Part shown: positions 18,649 through 50,153 of the stretch, in pieces
How the letters are laid out: each line of letters begins with the position of its first letter
How positions within the stretch are numbered: the first letter of the stretch is position 1
Assembly: GCA_038087875.1 (NCBI GenBank)
Contig: JAXLNO010006158.1
Span: forward strand, 1-64,000
Direction: 5' to 3'
Length of the DNA stretch: 64,000 nucleotides
DNA from: Malacoraja senta
Taxonomy: Eukaryota
Program-made: the position numbers and the translations under genes
Notes under the pieces: model-generated
The model's input: the letters and a program-made list of their open reading frames with translations, nothing else
What the model was told of the DNA's origin: nothing
Databases searched by the model: none

Positions 18649-18700
18649 CTGCTTGAGCCCCTTGTACGCGGAAGAAACTCAACAAGATGAACAGCATCAT
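18649..18700 (-). CDS. Orphan signal-peptide exon (MMLFILLSFFRVQGAQA) of a second, probably MHC-family, gene
   Basis: ATG ATG start, 52 bp, ends GCA G|gtaagt (phase 1), A-X-A cleavage motif, unique CpG-containing context. No downstream exons found in the window. Confidence 0.6.
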
Positions 18701-18774
18701 TTCACGCACAACCTCTCGCATCAACAGCAGCAACTGAGCCAAACTTCACCAACATCAAAGCAGGATCTCATCAT

Positions 18775-37709: not shown

Positions 37710-37715
37710 TTTATT
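37710..37715 (-). terminator. Candidate polyadenylation signal of the class I-like gene
   Basis: AATAAA on the minus strand in non-repeat sequence about 570 bp past the stop. An alternative lies at 36122-36127. Confidence 0.3.
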
Positions 37716-37844: not shown

Positions 37845-38315
37845 ACAGTACAGCACAAGAACAGGCCCTTTGACCCACAATGTTTGTGCCGAACATGATG
37901 CCAAGACCAATTGTTATCTGCTTGCACATAATCCATATCCATCCATACCCTGCATATACATGTGCCTATCTAAAAGTCTCTTAAATGCCACTATCATATC
38001 TGCTTCCCCCACCACCCCCGGCAACACATTCCAGTCACTCACCACCCTTGGCGTAAAACACTTGTCCTGCACATCTTTTTTAAACTTTGCCACTCATTGT
38101 AAAGCTATACCTGCTCTTGTTTGATATTTCCTTCCTGGGTAAAAAGTCTGATGGTCTACCCTATCTCTACTCCTCCCAGTTTGATATATTACTGTCAGGT
38201 CTCCCACCAATCCCCGACATTCCAGAGAAAACAATCCAAGTCTGTCCAACTTCTCCCTGTGGCTAATACCCCACTAATCCAGGCATCATTCCGGTAGACC
38301 TCCTCTGCATCCCAA
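37845..38315 (-). mobile_element. Old 5'-truncated CR1 overlapping the end of the class I CDS
   Basis: Minus strand TGCAGAGGAGGTCTACCGGAATGATGCCTGG corresponds to the CR1 QRRFTRMMPG segment and continues to the CR1 3' tail. Confidence 0.8.
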
Positions 38316-38506
38316 CGGAAGCTGGTTGTGCTTCATGGTCCTCTCCTGGTCTCTGCTGTTGCCAGCTGGTCCCTGTTCATTGAAAGGTTTTATCTTTTTC
38401 TTCTTCTTCCAGCAACCAATTCCAAGGATGATCACCAGGAGAATGAGAGGAACGATTACAGCTCCAGTCACGATCCTAATCTTTATATCTTCTTTCGCTG
38501 CCATCT
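38286..38506 (-). CDS. MHC class I-like gene, exon 5 (connecting peptide, transmembrane, cytoplasmic tail, stop)
   Basis: caacag| phase-1 acceptor. (E)MAAKEDIKIRIVTGAVIVPLILLVIILGIGCWKKKKKIKPF...GLPE*: a hydrophobic helix followed by a poly-Lys stop-transfer. The five exons total 1083 bp = 360 aa + stop with no internal stop. Confidence 0.85.
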
Positions 38507-38756
38507 CTGTTGGCATATATAGTTCATTTTAAACATTTATTGATCAATTACGACTTTGAAATGATTTTATTATCTACATTAAACTAGCATTGTTCACATC
38601 TAAATAAAAAGTAACAAAGTCTTAGATTTATGTAATTGTCCAGACGATGGATGTTTAAATAGATCAATGAAAAATCTTTGAAGTTCATATTAGCGTTGAG
38701 ATTTTATCTGCAGCATTTAATTATGAATTTAAAGAATCAAGCATATGTCAGAAATA

Positions 38757-39590
38757 AAGATTCAAGATACAAGATATTTTATTAGTCACATTCACATACA
38801 CCCAGGTGTAGTGAAGTGAAATGCTTTTTGCCATTATGCAGCACACAAAAAAGAGAGAGAATACAGACACAACACCAAGATAGTCTTAACACTGAACATC
38901 CCCCCACAATGGGTCCCACCATGAGGGAAGGCACAAAGTCCAGTCCCCAACCCCAGTTCACCCATAGTCGGGCCCATTTAGGCCTCCACAGTTGCCTCTA
39001 CGGAGGCCCGATGTTCCAGGCCGTTCTCGCCGGGTGATGTTGCTCCAGCGTCGGGAGAGTCCTCCCAGCGGCCTGGGAACCCTGGAACGGCCGCTTCCGC
39101 ACTGGGGGCCGCGGCTTCTGAAGCCAACAAGGCCGAGCCGGTTGGAGCTCCACAACTGGCGCTCTCATCTAGAGATCCCAGGCTCCCGGTGTAAAGTTCA
39201 GCGCCGCCGCCCGCGGCTGGTCGCTCCACAGTCCCGCAGCTCCGCGATGTTTTCTCCAGCGATCCTCAGCTCACCGGAGCTCCAGCGCGGCGACCCGGGC
39301 AAGGCACCGCCCGCTCCGCGATAGCGCTCCAGCGCTGTGCCGAAGCCGAGGCTCTGGGCGGTCCCCGACAGGAAACGCCGCTCCAGGCCCGCTGGTAGGC
39401 CGCGAGGACGGGTCGAAGCTGCAGCCCGGAGAAAAGCTGCCTCTCCGGCCAGGTAGGGACCCTGAAAGGTAGTTTCCCCCCCACACAAAAAAGTCTAGAC
39501 CTCCAAAACAAAACACTTTACTGACTAAAATAAAAAATAAAGGTGAAAGGACAGACAGCTGCTGGCTGGGCAGCCGCACACAGGTCAGCG
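38757..39590 (-). mobile_element. CpG-rich non-autonomous element with a Rex1/L2-type 3' tail (intron 4)
   Basis: GC-rich body; 3' end CATTTCAC...GTGACTAATAAA + (TCTTGA)n on the minus strand. Confidence 0.6.
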
Positions 39591-39603
39591 CCCCCTGGTG
39601 GTC
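39586..39603 (-). promoter_or_regulatory. CTCF-like core motif
   Basis: GACCACCAGGGGGCGCTG on the minus strand, essentially the CTCF consensus. Confidence 0.6.
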
Positions 39604-40139
39604 TATTTGCAGTGTAGAGGTCAACAAGGCTATTTTCTTATGTTGACCATTGTTATTTTAGCAAATAAAAGTGAACCCATTTATAGTTGATAAAACTTCA
39701 AAGGTTTTAAACTTTGCTGATATTTCAATATCTGAGAGTTTGATATTCTCACACACACACACTCTCTTTCTCTCCCTCCCCCTCCCCCTCTCTCTGTCTC
39801 ACACGCATGAGCGCACACACACACACACACGCACACTCAGACATTAACACTACTGTCTATTTGTACTGACCAGCAATTTTAACCATGTCATCTTGGCCCT
39901 GGTGTGAAGATATTTGCAGAGGTCTTGACTGGAACAAATAAGTCAGCTACAGAACAGGTGCTGCTACTTCAGACTGATAATGGGGTTGGATGTGGCACCA
40001 CTATTGGCCTTTTGTGCAACTAACTACTATTAAAAAATTAGCTAGATGCCCAAGAAATAAGATAAGAGACCTTGGCCAGGATCAGCCTATCTTGCTTCCT
40101 ACATTTAGATGTGAGTTAAGGGTGACATAAGAATAATTT

Positions 40140-40920
40140 TTACCATTGGAGCAGAAGTAGGCCTTTCAGTCCATTGAGTCTACTCCACCATTCAGTCATG
40201 GCAGATCTATTTTTACCTCTGAATCCCATTCTCCAGCCTTCTCCCTGTAACTTTTGGCACCCGTACTAATCAAGAACCTATCATTCTCTGCTTTAAAATA
40301 TGCAATGACTTGACCCACACAGCTGTCTGTATCAATGAATTCCACAGATTCACCACCCTGTGACTAAAGAAATTCCTCCTCATCTCCATTTTGAAAGTAC
40401 GTATTTTTATTGTGAGGCTGTGCTAGACTCTCCCATTACTGAAAACATCCTATCCACATCCACTAACTGGGACTTTCATTAACTGGTAGGTTTCAGAGAT
40501 TTTCCCCTCATCCTTCTAAATTCCCACGAGTAGAAGCCCAGAGACTTCAAACGTTCCTCATACGTTAAATCAATCATCCCCAGGACATACTTCCTCTGGA
40601 CCCTCTCCAAAGCCAACACATCCTTTCTAATATGGAGCCCAAAACTGCTCACAATATTCCAAATGTGTCTTCACCAGTGCCCGATAAATCCTCAGCATTA
40701 TATCATTGTTTTTATATTCTAGTCCCCCCGAAATGAATGCTGGCATTGCATTTGCCTTACTTACCACTGACTCAATCTGCAAATGAACTATTTGGGAATC
40801 CTGCACTAGTACTCCCACTTTGTAGCTCAGATTTCTGAATTCTCTCCCCATTTAGTAAATAGTCTATGTCTTTATTCCGACTGCCAAAATGTAAAACCAG
40901 ACACTTGCTACACTGTATTC
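40140..40920 (-). mobile_element. CR1 LINE fragment
   Basis: ALVKTHLEYCEQFWAPY motif and the CR1 3' UTR. Confidence 0.8.
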
Positions 40921-40944
40921 CATTTGGCTCTGCTTTGCCCACTC

Positions 40945-41600
40945 GGTGGAACAGCTGCCTTACAGCGCCAGAGCCCCGGTTCAATTCTGACTACGGGTCC
41001 CGTCTGTACAGAGTTTTGTACCTTCTCCCCCGGACCTGCTTGGGTTTTGCCCTGGATCTCCGGTTTCCTCCCTCAGTCCAAAGACATACAGGTTTGTAGG
41101 TTAATTGGCTTGGTATAATTGTAAATTGTCCCCTAATAAGTAAGATAATGTAAGTGTGCAGGGATCGCTGGTTGACGCAGACTCGTGGGCCAAAGGGCCG
41201 GTTTCTGCGCTGTATCTCTTAAATTAAACCACATTCCATTGACTATCAATAATTCTGGGCAATTAGATAACCACAAATTAATAATGGGTGGCACAGTGGC
41301 GTAGCGGTAGAGCTGCTGCCTTACTGCACCAGAGACCTGGGTTTGATCCTGACTACAGGTGCTGTCTGCAAGGACATTGTATGTTCTCCCTGTGACTGCG
41401 TGGGTTTTCTCCGGGTGCTCCGGTTTCCTCCCACACTCCAAAGGCATACAGGCTTGAAGGTTACTTGGCTTAGGTAAAATTGTAAATTGTCCCCAGTGTG
41501 TTGGTTAGTGTAAATGTACGGGCTGATCACTGTTCAGCGTGGACTCAGTGAGCTGAGGGGCCTGTATCTGCACCATATCTCTAAAGTCTAAAATCTAAAT
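40945..41600 (+). mobile_element. Two HE1-type V-SINEs
   Basis: Head, V-domain and tail at about 40945-41222 and 41287-41600. Confidence 0.8.
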
Positions 41601-41691
41601 GCACAGCTTAGTTAAGAGTGTGTTGAGGCTGTTATCTCAGTCCAGGAGGTTTATTCTCTCAAGTGATCAGCCTCATTGACTTGCCACTTAC

Positions 41692-41964
41692 CCTGTGGAA
41701 CATTGACTCCCTGCAGCAGAGTTGCATGTTCAATGTAACAGGAGAATTTTGCCACATCTTCTCTACTCAGTTGAATTGTATTCTTCAGCTGGTAAGTCCC
41801 ATCCCAATTGGGCAACAGATCACTGGATTCAGACTCGTGGTCTCCCTCACCATCTCTCAGCCACGTTACATCGATGGCCCGTGGGTAGAAGCCTGTGACA
41901 AGGCAGGAGAGTCTCAGTGATTGTGACCCATCACGTTTAATCCCAATAAACACCTCAGGGGTTT
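41692..41964 (-). CDS. MHC class I-like gene, exon 4 (alpha3, C1-set Ig domain)
   Basis: ttgcag| acceptor, |gtaagt donor, 273 bp, phase 1-1. LSCLVTGFYPRAIDVTW...LPNWDGTYQ...FSCYIEH are C1-set motifs. Confidence 0.95.
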
Positions 41965-42774
41965 CTGCAAGTGTAGGAAGCGTCAGAATCAGTGAAGACA
42001 TGAACAAAAGCCTTCAATTGTAAGATCACTGCAACTCACCTCTTTCCCAATCAGTTTTTTCTCCAGCTGAACAAAGTTTCCAGCCTAGACCCAAAATGCT
42101 GGAATAACTCAGCAGGTCAGGCAGCATCTCTGGAGAGAAGGAATGCCCAGAGATGCTATCTGACCCACTAAGTTACTCCAACATCTTCTATCTTCGGTGT
42201 AAACCATCATCTGCAGTTCTATCTTGCACAAAGTTTACAGCCTTTTCTCTTTTCATTTTGCATTTCTGGCAAAACAACAAAACATTTAGTTTTAATATCA
42301 CTGACATGCTCCTTATCTTAGCTCCAGACTTGAACTGACAGCGCAGATGTAAGGGGAATGCAGGCCCAATGGAGGAGTATAACTCACCATTGGGATTGAT
42401 ACTGTAGACATGATTGCTTCTACTTGTTCATGAATCTCAGCTGAATAATAACACTAAATATTCCAAGAGGGAATGGGAGGAAGAAGTTCTTCAACCAGAG
42501 AACTGTTGGAAATTGGATGTCACCATCCCAAGGAGTAATAGAGGCAAATAGAGAATCTGATTGGGTTTCTGATCAGCACAGCAACAGACCCTTCAGGCAC
42601 AAGGTCAATGCTAAACATAAGACCAAGATACATATCCCTCCATTTCCTGAATATCTATATGACTGTGGATAGAGGACGCTGGTACAATATTTATCTTTCA
42701 CTTGCACTTCCTACCCACTGGCTCCATCTAAGAGGCACGTTGCCAGACAATTTACTGATACCCTCGCCCAAGAA

Positions 42775-43066
42775 CAGGGTGGCGAAGCGGTCGAACTACT
42801 GCCTTACAGCGCCAGAGACCTGGGTTTGTTACTAACTACGGGTGCTTGTCTTTACGCAGTTTGTACGTTCTCCCTGTGACCTGCGTGGGTTTTATCCGAG
42901 ATCTTCGGTTTCAGCTCACACTCGAAAGACGTACAAATTTGTAGGTTAATTGGATTGGTATAAATGCAAATTGTCCCTAGTGTGTGTAGGATAGTGTTAG
43001 TGTGCGGGCATGGCTGGTCGGTGCGGTCTCGGTGGGTTTCCGAGCTGTATCTCTAAACTAAACTAA
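42775..43066 (+). mobile_element. HE1-type V-SINE
   Basis: Head, V-domain, (CTAAA)n tail. Confidence 0.82.
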
Positions 43067-43166
43067 ATAATTACTCAAGTGACAGCCTGAAGTGCATGAT
43101 ATTTCCCACCTGATCTATCCAGAGGATATCCTCTGGCCCATCAGTCAGAGTGCCTACGTCATGTAC

Positions 43167-43442
43167 CTCTCCTCTGTAGTGCTTCTTGTCCACACTCCAG
43201 ATATATCCGCAGCCACTTCACACAGTCCTTCTCCAGGAGATCTTTAAAATACTTGTTCATGAAGGTGTTGACGTTCCACCGATCTGCTAGCATCTGGAAA
43301 TCTGGACGTAGTGCAATCCAGCGCATTCTGTCCTTGTCAAAAGCACAGGCATCCTCCCCATCATAACCCAGTCTGACAAACCCATCAGTGGAATTGTCAC
43401 TGTCCACTTCACAGCCGCAGAAACCCTGGACAAAGAAAACAG
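43167..43442 (-). CDS. MHC class I-like gene, exon 3 (alpha2 domain)
   Basis: Pyrimidine tract + cccag| acceptor, |gtacat donor, 276 bp (the canonical class I alpha2 exon size). VQGFCGCEV...YDGED...RW...CVKWLRIYLE contains the C101-C164 pair, Q96, G120, D122, W147 and Y171. Confidence 0.95.
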
Positions 43443-45188
43443 CTGGGGCTGAGGTAGGGGTGGAGGATTTGGGTTGGGGAGAGTGGATGGAAGGGAGAGG
43501 CAATTTACAAATCAGTTCTCAGCATGGTACAAACAGGCATAACAGAACACAACATGGACCTGTACAGCACAGGAGCAGGTTTAGCTCAGAGATACAGCGC
43601 GGAAACAGGCACTTCGGCCCACCGAGTCCGCACTGACCAGTGATCCCCGCACATTAACAGTATCCTACACAGACTACTTTTCTTTTCCAGCTTTCTCCAC
43701 CCTACTCCATCACTCTAAATGGTCCTGGTCTCATATGTTTTCTGTCCATTTTTCCACAGCATGCTGCCTGACTCGTTGAGTTCCTCCTGTTTGTTTTTAA
43801 TTCAGATTGGCAGCATCTGCAGTTTGCTGTGACTCCATCTTAGTACAAATGATGATCAATGTGGATTCAGTGAGCAGAAGGGCCAGTTTCCATGATGTAT
43901 GACTCTATGACCCATTGCCCATATACTGAGGGCATGGACTAACCTCAAGTGTTGAGGGGGGAAGCTTTACTGTAGCGGATGTAACACTAAAGGAGTTTTG
44001 CTGTGTCAGAAGGGTAGAATTCAGATTCTGCACTTTCGTACATAAAGAACAGAGGAAGGAGTGCATTGTCAGATGGGCAATGTTATACAGTGAACAGGTC
44101 AGTCTGAAGGTTAAGGCAATGCAGATGGGTAGTACATCAAGGCTGTTGCACTGTGTGGGATTGCTACACTCTCTGTGGATTGTTGCCAATATTGAGGGAA
44201 TGCTGGATTAACAGAATATTATTGTTGAGGGAATACATCATAGTCACCATCAACCAGCTTAATCAAGGTCCCATCTCTAGGTGATCAGGCTATAAATAAA
44301 CTATGGTTTCTCCCTCATTCTAGCCCAATAAAACAGATGATCCAATCCATCCACTTTTTACTGGTGTTAAATATCAAATGCTTAACCCATAAAGAGACTA
44401 TCACCAGCCAACTGTTATGACTGGGTGTTCAGCAGTTAGGACACATTAAATATAGACGATGGGCCGTGTCTCTATCAAAATGTGATGGAGTAAATGTCTG
44501 AAACAGCATCAATGGTGCTGAAGTGAAAAAGGTTGAGAGTTTCTGGTTCCCCTACTGCCTCAGGAGACTAAGGAAATGCGGCATCTCCAATGACTCTTAC
44601 AAACTTCTACAAATGTGCCATAGAAAGCACACTGACAGGTTGCATCACAACTTAGTTTGGAAAGAGTTCTGCCCAATACCGCTGGAAATGGCAGGGAGGT
44701 GGAGATGTAGCACAGTGGATCACACAAACATGATTCCCCAATAGTGAATCCATCTGTATTTCAACTGGCTCAGGAAAGCAGACAACATAATCAAAGATTC
44801 ACCCGCTCTGGTCATTCCTTCTTCTTCCTGCAGAAGGTACGTAAGCATTAAAGCGTGCACCACCAGACTCAGTAACTGTTTCCTCCCCTATGTTATCAGG
44901 TTTCTGAACAGTCCTCCCTTATGCTAGGGTTCACCTCAACCCCATTGTAGACACTGGACTTTGTCTCTGGCACTGGTGCCTTACAATGCTGAGAACTACA
45001 TTCTGCACTCTTTGCTCTACCTATTGTACGAGTTTGGTTTGATTGTATTTATGAATAGTTTTCTTTGATGTGATTGACTAACATGCAAAAAAAGTGTATC
45101 AGAGAATCATGTGTCAACAATAAAACTAAAACAAAATCCATCTGTGTCATCACTGAGTGTCTACCCCAGGTCCGCTCACGACACTTAC

Positions 45189-45449
45189 TCGAGATACCAT
45201 GTTGCTGTTGGTAGACTATCTCAGCATTTCCTCTGACAATCCCATGAAAACCTGCAACTGTGATGGCCATTGAATCCCAGTGATCCTGCGGGAAAGACTG
45301 GGCCATCCATCGCTGTCTGGGAACAGCCCGCTCTAGTGTGCTGTCAAAATATGCTATCTGGACGTCATCCAGCATTGCTACCATACTGTACTCAGGCAGC
45401 TCATTCAATCCATGGTTCAACAGGTAGTAAAATGCAAGATGGTGAAAAT
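45189..45449 (-). CDS. MHC class I-like gene, exon 2 (alpha1 domain)
   Basis: ttgcag| acceptor, |gtaagt donor, 261 bp, phase 1-1. Translates (D)FHHLAFYYLLNHGLNELPEYSMVAMLDDVQIAYFDSTLERAVPRQRWMAQSFPQDHWDSMAITVAGFHGIVRGNAEIVYQQQHGIS, with class I alpha1 hallmarks H3, LDD, YFDS, PRQRW and W60. Confidence 0.93.
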
Positions 45450-45639
45450 CTGCAATGCATAAACAAAAATAAGTATGATTGTATCATTCACTGAAAATAA
45501 CTAAGTTATTAATGCTAAAACTGATAACAATACAATAACTTTGAATAAGGGAGTCACAAGGACCTGCAGATGCAAGTGCTGGATGAACTCAGTGGGGCAG
45601 GCAGCATCAATGATCAGGTGACAATTTGGGTCAGGAGCC

Positions 45640-45958
45640 TTTAGTTTAGTTTTTAGCTTAGAGATACAGCATGGAAACAGGCCCTTCGGGCCACTGAGTC
45701 CACACTGACCAGCAACCCCCACACAATAACACTATCCTACACACACTAGGGACAATTTACATTCTACACCAAGCCAATTAACCTACAAACCTGTACGTCT
45801 TTGGAATGTGGGAAGAATCCGAACATCTCGGGAAAAACCCACACGGTAATGGGGTGAATGGACAAACTCCGTACAGACAGCATCCGTAATCAGGATCCAA
45901 CCTGGGTCTATGGTGCTGTAATCGAGATAAGGGAGCAAGTCTACTGCTGCACCACTGA
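45640..45958 (-). mobile_element. HE1-type V-SINE
   Basis: Reverse-complement SINE. Confidence 0.8.
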
Positions 45959-46992
45959 GCCTTCTTCAAGAGTTGGCATGATGGGCTCTGATACCTACTC
46001 CACCAATTATGGTCGAGGTATTGAATGATCCTATTGGATTGTTTCCCATCTTCAAAGATCTATTATTGTCTATCATGTCGATAGGTTCTACTAGTTACAA
46101 TATTCCAAAATTTGAAGAATATTTTATTATATTAAGAAACTGGACAATGTCAAGGAGACTTTATAGAATCATAGAGAGGTAAAGTCAAAGAGTCATACAG
46201 CAGGGAATCAGGGCCTATGGCTCAACTTGCCACACCAACCAACATGCCCCATCTACACTGCCTGTATTTCATCAGTACATAAGTTCTAGGAGAATAATTA
46301 GGCCAGTCAGCCCATCGGCCATTCAATCATGGCTGATCTATCTCTCCCTATCAACCACATTCTCCTGCCTGCACCCCATAACCCTTGAAACCTGTACTGA
46401 TCAAGAATCTGTTAATCTCCACCTGAGAAATATCCATTGACATGGGCTCTACAGCTGACTGAGGCCCATATCCTTATAAGCCTATCCTATCCATGTACCT
46501 GATTAAATGCTTCTTAAATGTCGTGACAGTACGTGCCTGAACTACCTTCTCCGGCAGTTCATTCAGTACACCCACCACCTTTTGTGTAACACAGCTACGC
46601 CTCAGGTTCCTATTAAATCATTCCCCCCTCATCTTAAACTTATGTCCTCTGGGTACAGCACATTAAAAGGCCCTTTAGCCCACCAAGTTCGTGGTAACCA
46701 TCAAACACCTATTTGTACTTGTAGTACGCTAACCCATTTAATATTTGCCAATCTCCCATTAACACCTCCCTCATCCCCTCCACCAATTCTAATACATATG
46801 CATGATCAATTCACTTGGGCCAACTTACCTTTCAGCCCGGCATTTTTGGGACGTGCGGGGAAACTGGAATAACCATAGGAAATAACCATGGGGGGGAGGG
46901 TGGAGGTGGAGGGTGGAGACTGTAATAAACAGGGCCTAAATACTGGAGTAACTCAGTGGGTCAGGCAGCATCTCCAGAGAAAAGGAAAAGGT

Positions 46993-47020
46993 GACGTTTC
47001 GTGTCGAGACCCTTCTTCAG
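46993..47020 (-). ncRNA. Minimal type I hammerhead ribozyme-like core in a Penelope terminal repeat (representative copy)
   Basis: CUGAAGA-A-GGGUCUCGACAC-GAAAC-GUC: catalytic boxes intact, one mismatch in stem II. Confidence 0.55.
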
Positions 47021-49189
47021 ACTGAGAGTCAGGGGACAGAGAACCGAGAGATATGAAAAAGTACAATGAAATATATGCACCCCCGACTCTGTCTGATGCA
47101 GTGTCTTGACCTGAAACTCCACCTATTCCTTTTCTCCAGCGATGCTGCCTGACTTGCTGAGTTACGCCAGCCTTTTGTATCTATCTTCGGTGTAAACCAG
47201 CATCTGCATCAGCAGTCAGAAGAAGGGTCTCGACCCGAAACGTCATCCATTCCTTCTCTCTAGGGATGCTGCCTGTGCCGCTGAGTTACTCCAGCTTTAT
47301 TGTCTATCTTTGGTTTAAATCAGCTTCTGCAGTTCCTTCTTACACATCTGCATTCCTTCCTACACTTGTCTCAACTGAAACATCACCTAACCATGTTCTC
47401 CAGACATACTGCCTGACCTGCTGAATTACTCCAGTATTTTATGTGTATTAACCAGCATGTGCAGTTTCTTGTTTCCACACGAACAAGCAGTATTTGTTCT
47501 GTGATAAAGATTACATGGAGCACACCATACAGTCAAAGTTCATGTGTTTAAGTGAAGTGAGAAGGGGCCCCGAGGGCAGAGTTAGAAGTGTCTGTTTCAG
47601 TGTTACCAGGAGAAACATAAGAAGGCTAAGAGTGGAATAGTAACGATAAAATCCATGTGGCTTCCCAAAACACTCCACAGCCAAGGATTTTTGTTTTATA
47701 TGTTATTATTTCAACACGGCCATCACCATTATATTTACTTCCATCTGATAAGAATGGGATTAAACTTTCAGGACGAGCATCCGATTACAGGTTTGTAATC
47801 TCTAAGCCTTGACGAATGTCAGAATAGTTAGAAAGGTACCATTGTGTGGGAAGAAATTGCTCATCAGATTCCCATTAAATCTTTCCCCCCTCAATTTAAA
47901 CCTATGTCCTCTGGTTCTCGATTCTGTAATCTGTTGAATATGTTGCCCACTTGAAAATTTCCAGATTGAGATTGATAGATTTTTGTTCATTAAGGGTGTA
48001 ATGGGCTGGAGTTCGGCCACAATGTCTGTGCCGAACATGATGTCAAGTTCAACTAAACTCTTCATGCTTGTAGATGATTCATATCCCTCAATTCCCTGCA
48101 TATCCACGTGCCTATCCTCAAGCTTCTTAAATCTCATTATCGTCTTCTGGGGAAGTGGTGATGGGGTAATGGATAGGGTCTGCAGGACAGGAAGCATGCA
48201 ACAAACAACAAGATGGCAACAACATTAACACAACATTGATTGGTCATTTAATGCAGGCTGAATTTTACCATCATGTGGGTGTCTAACACCAGCTGAGGAA
48301 ATCTTGGAGAGGTGGGACACCTACTAATGCAGAAGTCACTTCTTTATTTAAAGTGCACATCACCGGTTTACCTGAATTCTGTCTGAGGCATTAGTGCAAG
48401 GACAGATTGGACAAACATGGATTGTTTTCTCTTGTATACTGGAGGTTGAAGGGAGACCTGATGAAAGTGCATAACATGGTGAGAGGCACAGACAGAGTGG
48501 ACAGCCAGAACCTTTTTCCCAGGGTGGAAATGTTGAAGACCAGAGAACATCACTTTAAGGTTGGAGAAGCAATGTTCAAAGGAGATGAGCGGAGCAAGTT
48601 GTTTTATGTGGAGGGTGGTGGACATCTGTAACGCGCTGCCAGTGGTGGTGATGGTGGTGGCAGATATAACAGTTACATTTCAGAGGCTTTTGGATAGGTA
48701 CATAGTTAGGCAGGGAATGGCCAGATACAGATCACATACAGGTAGAGGAGATTAGTTTATTTTGTTCGGCACAGACATTGTGGGCCGAAGGTAGACACAA
48801 AATGCTGAGGTAACAGCGGGTCAGGCAGCATCTCTGGAGAAAAGGAATGGGTGACGTTTTGGGGTTTTGGGTCGAGACCCTTCTTCAGACTGAAGGACCG
48901 AAGGACCTGCTCCTATGCTGTATTGTACTATGCTCTATGTTCATTATTTACATGTATTCAGTTCTTCTCTTCAATGGATTACCAAGGTAACCATAGTATA
49001 TATAACCTCACAGGAACCTTCACAACTCAGGAATGACCATTACCCAAAATTATTAATACATTCAATTCAATCATTCAATTAATACATCCAAGACAATGAA
49101 CCCAGGGCAAACACAGGGACTGTGCAACAGTAAATAGAATCAGTTTTGTTGTTTCCTCAAAGTTCACAAGTAGAAAGAGCATTGCTTAC

Positions 49190-49241
49190 CAGACGAGACA
49201 GTGGCCACACCGTAAGTGTTGAGTAAGGTAAAAAGAAGCAT
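49190..49241 (-). CDS. MHC class I-like gene, exon 1 (signal peptide MLLFTLLNTYGVATVSS)
   Basis: ATG at 49241. 52 bp (17 codons + 1 nt), hydrophobic, ends TCT G|gtaagc (phase 1). Joins in frame to the alpha1 exon (G+AT = Asp). Confidence 0.82.
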
Positions 49242-49379
49242 GTTTAACAGCCGCCCACAGCACTATTTAACCAGCAGAGTAAATGCAGCAACAGTAACTT
49301 AATCTCTTGTACTTTTTTAACAGAACTCTGGTGTGAAGCTAATTATTGGTCCATGTGTACACAAACCTGATAACCAGAT

Positions 49380-49421
49380 CCAATGGGAATGAGACCACTT
49401 GTTCTGGTCACTAATTGCCAG
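49380..49421 (-). promoter_or_regulatory. Candidate X/X2-Y (SXY-like) module of the class I-like gene
   Basis: Minus strand reads CTGGCAATTAGTGACC, then ATTGG (inverted CCAAT) 22 bp after the TGAC, about 140 bp upstream of the ATG. Confidence 0.55.
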
Positions 49422-50153
49422 TGAATACAGTTTAAGGATCAGGTTTTATGGTAGGGATTATATTGGTGTTTTAAGGACAACAATTACAAAATCATATTTC
49501 ACATAGCATCTTACAACCGAATAGATGTTTCTCCAAGTATAACTATTTTACAATTCAGAATGCAGTCAATTCCACAAACTGCAGTTTTAGATAAACCAGA
49601 TAGTCTACTTTACTGTGTAGGAAGGAACTGCAGATGCTTGTTTTACTGTAGAAGGGTCTGAAGAAGGGTTTCGGCCCGAAACGTTACTTATTTCCTTCGC
49701 TCCATAGATGCTGCTGCACCCGCTGAGTTTCTCCAGCATTTTTGTGTACCTTGTTTACTGTAGGCAGATGCAAAAAGCTGGAGTAACTCAGCGGGTCAGG
49801 CAGCATCCTGGAGGTAATACCTCAGTCCCTCTCTTGGCAGCCCACTCCTTGCGCCCGTCGGCGGCAGCGGCTCCCTCCTCCACGACTCTCCGGGTTTCTG
49901 GGCCAAGCTCAGCAGCTTCCACCGGGTTGCTCTTGACACCGGTGAACCAAACCTGCCGGCACATATGGCTGCAGGCGACCGGCCGAGTCTAGCTTTGTTC
50001 TCGGCGGCTGCCGGGTCTGTCCTTGATTTCACTGGCCCGCCGGGATGTTCTCGGCGGCCGCCTGGTCGATCCGTGGTCATTTGCTTCTGTCACTGCGGTG
50101 CATCCCAGAAGCTTATGGCTAGTACACCATCTTCCTTCCAGCAGTCGATAACT

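Follow-up and report, generated by a model that had tools for sequence, protein, structure and literature searches.

A nonclassical, CD1-like MHC class I gene of the skate Malacoraja senta and its place beside UGA

Sharks and rays are the oldest animals with a major histocompatibility complex (MHC). Among their class I genes, UFA and UGA have only recently been recognised as CD1-like lipid binders, and a stretch of skate DNA that carries a further gene of this appearance raises the question which ligand, if any, its product might display. The stretch comprises 64,000 nucleotides (nt) of Malacoraja senta (assembly GCA_038087875.1, contig JAXLNO010006158.1, positions 1 to 64,000) and is referred to below as the window; the gene in question is a class I heavy-chain gene on its minus strand at 38286-49241. 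We find that it is a nonclassical, CD1-like elasmobranch class I gene, new to the catalogue as a member, of a kind that is already known. The explanation that we favour with moderate confidence, drawn from its sequence and from the analogy to its relatives, is that it belongs to the sister lineage of UGA and would encode a heavy chain that associates with beta2-microglobulin (beta2m), holds a lipid-like ligand in a UGA-like groove and is read by an invariant or semi-invariant receptor.

The gene and its peptide-anchor positions

A first-pass annotation, made from the letters of the window, had described an intact class I gene with five phase-compatible exons. Its start and end coordinates proved to be exact: from the start ATG at 49241 to the stop codon at 38288-38286 the reading frame is open without interruption, all junctions are in phase 1, which is the rule for class I genes, and the translation is recognised by the Pfam models MHC_I and C1-set. 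Every junction was read base by base, and each intron starts with GT and ends with AG. The exons are the following.

49190-49241, minus strand: exon 1, leader, with the start codon, a signal peptide of 17 amino acids (aa) and a phase 1 donor (G/GTAAG)
45189-45449, minus strand: exon 2, alpha1, with F7, H59 and Q84 and without an N86 glycosylation site (Pfam MHC_I)
43167-43448 or 43167-43442, minus strand: exon 3, alpha2, with C99, C101, A123, L143, R146, W147, L159, C164, Y171 and an N-S-T glycosylation site (Pfam MHC_I, 61 bits)
41692-41964, minus strand: exon 4, alpha3, an immunoglobulin (Ig) C1-set domain with its cysteine pair (Pfam C1-set, E 5e-15)
38286-38506, minus strand: exon 5, connecting piece, transmembrane helix, basic stop-transfer stretch, a cytoplasmic tail of about 40 aa without tyrosine, and the stop; colinear with the Leucoraja and Pristis tails

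An MHC_I platform, a C1-set alpha3 domain and a transmembrane anchor, encoded with one domain per exon and joined at phase-1 junctions, give the product the fold and layout of MHC class I, and all class I-like open reading frames of the window lie on the minus strand. The window protein has the C101-C164 pair and the alpha3 cysteine pair, as do all 14 members of the lineage described below. Exon 1 differs from the Leucoraja DNA by one synonymous change, and the N-termini of the RefSeq orthologues from Pristiophorus and Heptranchias agree with it.

The length of the protein is 360 or 362 aa, depending on which of two alpha2 acceptors six nt apart is used (CCTCAG/CCCCAG/CT). The donor at 45189 (GTAAGT at 45188) together with the acceptor at 43442 gives the 360-aa chain that had been annotated, while the acceptor at 43448, 6 nt upstream, gives 362 aa and reproduces the RefSeq models of sawfish and little skate; the annotated length hence stands for one acceptor and not for the one that matches the orthologue models. 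At these tandem acceptors (43449 and 43443, minus strand) the ray models take the upstream site, and the shark orthologues are 2 aa shorter here. The pair could provide an alternative Pro-Ala insertion at the alpha1/alpha2 boundary. Two further sites were discarded. The donor at 45198 (357 aa) is used by no orthologue, and all orthologous proteins hold three residues that only donor 45189 supplies; the acceptor CAG/GG at 43426, the AG nearest the conserved V-Q-G motif, leads to an immediate stop.

The closest protein, P0001, is encoded on a scaffold of Leucoraja erinacea (little skate), and across the whole gene this scaffold and the window are colinear. Identity is 93-96% in the exons and about 89% in the introns, and the Leucoraja DNA keeps the frame and all eight splice sites. 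Since exons, splice sites and open frame are conserved in this orthologue, the gene model is not a product of chance. The ratio of nonsynonymous to synonymous substitution rates (dN/dS, Nei-Gojobori) against Leucoraja, calculated from small counts, is 0.44 for the gene as a whole; alpha2 has 0.14 and alpha1 0.51. The RefSeq model P0001 is itself partial: it misses the leader exon, which is nevertheless present in the DNA of the scaffold (JAMYXN010000384.1, here L001) at about L001:100-151, and it reads 12 codons beyond the alpha2 donor into the intron. A second, oddly modelled Leucoraja erinacea protein, P0164, on a separate 122-kb scaffold, matches the alpha2 and alpha3 exons at 85-95% and could represent a haplotig or a second copy of the gene.

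We checked the numbering of the peptide anchors against P0169, a shark classical-like sequence with all nine invariant residues, to which the window protein aligns free of gaps through most of alpha1 and alpha2. Only W147 and Y171, two of the nine peptide-terminus anchors, are kept. Six of the annotated replacements were confirmed, namely Y7>F, Y59>H, Y/F123>A, T143>L, K146>R and Y159>L. The remaining one, at position 84, had been given as V and is more likely Q, because in that reading the classical R-T-N-Q-S motif and the NQT site of UGA fall into line; the V stands three residues before, and in either register position 84 is neither Y nor R. The scaffold and beta2m-side residues H3, Q96, C101, G120, D122 and C164 are all present, as annotated. 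All 14 lineage members carry the same seven residues at former anchor positions, namely F7, H59, Q84, A123, L143, R146 and L159. Hydrogen-bond donors are lost at either end of the groove (N-terminal: Y7, Y59 and Y159; C-terminal: R/Y84 and T143), and the heavy chain cannot clamp peptide termini in the usual way.

Relatives, lineage and names

A full HMMER scan with the alpha1 domain returned one close cluster, that of little-skate P0001, which is 95% identical. Orthologues labelled "MR1-like" in RefSeq occur in at least 13 elasmobranchs (Leucoraja, Pristis, Mobula, Hypanus, Pristiophorus, Heptranchias, two Scyliorhinus, Stegostoma, Hemiscyllium, Chiloscyllium, Mustelus and Cetorhinus) and are 55-86% identical to the window protein. 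There is one match per genome, and five batoids are among the hosts. The next group is UGA with 36-43% identity, and everything else is at 36% or below.

Phylogenetic analysis was performed by maximum likelihood in IQ-TREE on 62 sequences, which included one CD1b and none labelled UBA or UDA; support is given as bootstrap / Shimodaira-Hasegawa approximate likelihood ratio test (SH-aLRT). The window lineage, UGA and UFA each form a clade with a support of 100/100. The window lineage groups with UGA (95/84), and both together group with UFA (89/80). Inside the window lineage the branching order agrees with the species tree, with batoids apart from sharks; the members are therefore orthologues, and the separation from UGA is older than the shark-ray divergence.

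Its place in the clade, the fixed residues F7, H59, C99, A123, L143, R146 and L159 and its position upstream of UGA put the window gene in the elasmobranch "MR1-like" orthogroup. It is not itself a UGA gene, as the two are reciprocally monophyletic sister clades and the genes lie side by side in the same genomes. Nor is it UFA, for the sequence of the solved UFA molecule (P0274; PDB entry 8gm8, titled shark nonclassical MHC class I, UFA, released 2024-11-27) falls in the separate UFA clade. A structure of UGA is available as PDB entry 9ch4 (titled shark nonclassical MHC class I, UGA, released 2026-03-18). The set of lineages against which the gene had been annotated, UAA to UEA, omitted UFA and UGA, its closest relatives.

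With that set the annotation had concluded that the gene was neither UAA nor UDA, which holds, as two of the nine anchors remain on alignment to P0169. The window gene shares with elasmobranch UAA and UDA the domain and exon layout, the C101-C164 pair and the beta2m-side scaffold residues, whereas UAA keeps nine of nine anchors, so that a classical UAA gene is ruled out. UDA is ruled out on the same grounds, since Almeida et al. are said to have found in 2020 that it retains eight of the nine invariant anchors. UEA is reportedly a large multigene family confined to sharks and UCA one confined to Squaliformes (an account ascribed to Almeida et al., 2021); both are ruled out by the single match per genome and the presence in five batoids. 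The host, which had been suspected to be a batoid, is a skate. The accompanying suggestion of a divergent UBA member has to be abandoned. UBA is a multicopy lineage derived from UAA (PMC12562908) and has a cluster of its own between C4 and RXRB (PMC10751288), whereas the tree places the window gene far from the UAA/UBA-like and multicopy class I sequences, in the clade that is sister to UGA, and its sawfish orthologue is located in the B2M-COL11A2 cluster and not on the C4 side. This orthologue, LOC127585976 (NC_067438.1 at 13.956-13.978 Mb), lies between B2M/BRD2 and COL11A2/RXRB, inside the MHC-Ib cluster, 42 kb upstream of the first of three sawfish UGA copies and on the same strand. Its entry in the supplementary material of Verissimo et al. 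2023 reads simply "MHC-Ib" (PMC10751288).

We found the lineage under no published name; the names used in the accessible literature stop at UGA, and that literature yielded no full description of UFA or UGA either. The idea of an unassigned lineage therefore survives as regards the name; it does not as regards novelty, given that the orthogroup is already in RefSeq and its sawfish member on the published MHC map. Very likely the laboratories behind the UFA and UGA structures know the lineage. The RefSeq name was assigned automatically because MR1 is the best tetrapod sequence match, and it is misleading for the orthogroup: MR1 orthology is ruled out by the ligand residues discussed below and by the literature.

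The predicted groove and its candidate ligands

Positions that line the groove of HLA-A2 (42 in total) were transferred to the window lineage and its relatives by sequence register via P0169 and not by coordinates, and the groove described here is hence a predicted one. When A, V, I, L, M, F, W and C are counted as hydrophobic, the hydrophobic fraction at these positions is 66% in the window lineage, 55% in UGA, 52% in UFA and 46% in two classical-like sequences. The 14 lineage members are near-invariant at the 42 positions. About 19 of them are identical to UGA, most prominently on the alpha2 helix face (M152, Y155, F156, L159, L160, D163) and the floor (G97, L116), and the differences from UGA cluster at the N-terminal end (F7, H59, C99, W167) and on the alpha1 helix (M63, M/V67, N77, I80). 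On the floor, Cys99 (codon 43415-43417, minus strand) is found in 14 of 14 members with no conserved partner cysteine, while the residue at this position is Phe in UGA, Trp in UFA and Tyr in classical molecules; it might be a reactive ligand-contact residue.

Conservation of the platform points in the same direction as in known monomorphic presenters. Between batoids and sharks the alpha1-alpha2 platform of the window lineage is 70% identical with 44% invariant columns, compared to 57% and 27% for alpha3. For alpha1-alpha2 the corresponding values are 63% and 21% in UGA and 38% and 7% in UFA. A platform that is conserved above alpha3 is the reverse of classical class I and is seen in monomorphic presenters such as MR1. 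Among the three lineages the window lineage, which is single-copy and present in every elasmobranch order sampled, has the most hydrophobic and most conserved predicted groove. DNA contigs of a close relative show four differences in the alpha3 exon (41692-41964) and none in the alpha2 and alpha1 pieces (43274-43407 and 45180-45323), the same pattern as the cross-species conservation.

An AlphaFold model was made for the ectodomain of the little-skate orthologue, which is 86% identical to the window protein, and reached a predicted local distance difference test score (pLDDT) of 88. Its best structural match is UGA (9ch4) with a Z score of 26.9 and a root mean square deviation of 2.4 A over 267 residues. 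By sequence, 9ch4 is likewise the best solved relative of alpha1 (E 3e-22), with 8gm8 as the other of the two nearest; the best solved match of alpha2 is MR1 (E 6e-17), and the best single-domain PDB match of alpha3 is 9ch4, followed by the alpha3 domain of CD1c.

UGA is thus the sister clade, the tandem neighbour on the same strand and the best structural and alpha1 sequence match of the window gene. The two share the groove residues Y9, Y22, V25, I33, V45, T66, F70, G97, L116, W133, W147, M152, Y155, F156, L159, L160, D163 and Y171 and the helix motif N-(K/R)-Y-F-K-x-L-L-E-x-D-C. They differ in that UGA keeps Y7, Y59 and K146 and has F99 and W81, whereas the window lineage has F7, H59, R146, C99 and F/V81, its alpha1 helix being the more hydrophobic of the two (M63, M/V67, I80). 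Where alpha1 ends UGA carries an NQT site, and a last exon of its own encodes a Y-Q-x-I tail; the window gene lacks both. Skate UGA ends in a Y-Q-T-I motif, while the tail of the window protein (K-K-K-K-K-I-K-P-F-N...) contains no tyrosine. Finally, UGA is multicopy in sawfish, unlike the single-copy window lineage. UFA is more remote. It shares with the window gene the superclade, the MHC-Ib cluster and a hydrophobic groove and has been called CD1-like, yet it is only about 30% identical, carries a deletion at K146, lacks W147 and Y171, evolves fast (with the low batoid-shark identity given above) and is multicopy in rays.

With a groove this hydrophobic, the annotated proposal that the hydrophobic replacements point to a non-peptide ligand remains the best reading. 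The product is a type I membrane heavy chain with a signal peptide, an alpha1-alpha2 platform, an Ig-like alpha3 domain, a transmembrane helix and a short tail, and would pair with beta2m. Its UGA-like groove may hold a conserved hydrophobic, lipid-like, non-peptide ligand, which an invariant or semi-invariant receptor would then read, much as with CD1d or MR1. Lipids head the list of likely ligands, given that CD1d-type lipids are reported for both UGA and UFA in a personal communication cited by a review (PMC12562908). Since the tail lacks a tyrosine sorting motif, unlike that of UGA, loading would probably take place along the secretory pathway or on the cell surface and not in endosomes. 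Tetrapod CD1 offers a partial parallel: it shares the hydrophobic groove without peptide anchors, and the window alpha3 scores well against the alpha3 domains of CD1c and CD1e, whereas no orthology signal is found at the sequence level, CD1b sits on a very long branch elsewhere in the tree, and the window-gene tail is without an endosomal sorting motif.

Several points weigh against this explanation. Lipid binding by UGA is known only through the personal communication in that 2025 review (PMC12562908), and the groove is the register-based one defined above. The fold alone does not discriminate, as classical, YF1 and MR1 structures come within roughly 2 in Z of UGA, and the high surface conservation would fit a ligand-free role as a receptor partner, too. 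In the one RNA run, from a close relative and 6% read, no reads fell on exons 2-4, only on repeats; three further runs that cover the exons are genomic DNA, because the introns are evenly covered too.

The foremost rival, to which we give a modest share of the probability, is an MR1-like presentation of a small polar or aromatic metabolite, possibly caught covalently by the unpaired Cys99. The RefSeq name of the whole orthogroup, the alpha2 match to MR1, the conservation of alpha1-alpha2 above alpha3 and the presence of Cys99 without a conserved partner in all members would fit it, and mammalian MR1 is likewise single-copy and the best tetrapod match. When the equivalents of the MR1 ligand residues were read from HMMER alignments with MR1 chains and a column table, however, none was matched: Ala or Val stands in place of K43, Gly in place of R94 and Leu in place of W156. 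Aliphatic residues dominate the groove, the tree groups the lineage with UGA and UFA, and the window gene is MHC-linked, so that the likeness to MR1 implies no orthology. The literature, moreover, restricts MR1 to mammals (PMC12562908, PMC11190491).

Only slightly less probable, and still improbable, is a class I-like molecule that carries no ligand, comparable to FcRn, HFE, ZAG or MIC, with a conserved surface for a protein partner and with hydrophobic groove residues that would do no more than fill a narrowed groove. Long invariant helix stretches with outward-facing charges, such as N-K-Y-F-K-x-L-L-E-K-D-C-V-K, would suit such a surface, and the loss of the peptide anchors would fit as well. 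Against it stand G97 and A123, which widen the floor pockets instead of filling them, and the model, whose helices have the usual form of an open class I fold and which matches peptide- and lipid-loaded structures best; the closest relative, UGA, also reportedly carries lipids (PMC12562908).

A specialised presenter in the manner of HLA-E, Qa-1 or UDA, which would take up a conserved hydrophobic peptide without the usual terminal anchors, appears unlikely to us. It could draw on the retained W147 and Y171, on the conservative exchange of K146 for R146 and on a length pattern of alpha1-alpha2 that equals that of fish classical molecules, while seven of nine terminal anchors are replaced, both groove ends are without hydrogen-bond donors and the sister lineage UGA is by report not a peptide binder. 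That the gene is an unexpressed or decaying copy in Malacoraja senta, as the lack of exon reads in the single relative's RNA run might suggest, is very improbable in view of a frame open over five exons, splice sites that are all canonical, exons conserved above introns, dN/dS of 0.14-0.5 in the ligand domains and intact orthologues in at least 13 species.

If a UGA-like, lipid-presenting heavy chain is indeed encoded here, it would be the third of a group of related genes, and a small family of non-peptide presenters would have been in place about 300 million years ago or more. It would also offer a clean target in the search for invariant T cells of cartilaginous fish, with one gene and no polymorphism to handle. 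A bolder version, which we put forward tentatively and regard as less probable than its negation, is that the gene represents an eighth, formally unnamed elasmobranch lineage, a monomorphic counterpart of CD1d or MR1 that restricts a subset of invariant T cells, possibly with covalent capture of its ligand. It would have arisen with UGA by duplication before the shark-ray split and since then have stayed single-copy, with a nearly frozen hydrophobic groove and the free Cys99.

Genomic neighbourhood and minor features

In little skate the orthologue and UGA are found on one 127-kb scaffold in the same order as in sawfish. The window itself contains, in that order too, the beginning of the neighbouring UGA gene, and one candidate signal lies downstream of the class I gene.

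18649-18721, minus strand: exon 1 of the neighbouring UGA gene, a leader of 24 codons followed by G/GTAAG, found by tblastn with skate UGA proteins
37710-37715, minus strand: candidate polyadenylation signal AATAAA, 570 nt past the stop, by motif match only

The UGA leader exon matches little-skate UGA at 22 of 25 residues, and the other exons of that gene lie beyond the window start. Between about 22 kb and position 1 the window follows exon 1 and intron 1 of the Leucoraja UGA gene colinearly.

Upstream of the ATG of the class I gene (49349-49466, minus strand), CCAAT occurs at -108 and -225 and ATTGG at -143; a simple pattern search of this upstream region gave no clear match to a TATA box or an interferon-stimulated response element (ISRE). 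An Rfam scan of the window returned zero matches. The introns and flanks are filled by one family of short interspersed nuclear elements (SINEs), whose copies are 74-80% alike and lie at 41300-41530, 42783-43009, 40944-41133, 45723-45921 and about 12 more places, with a well-kept core at 41393-41435.

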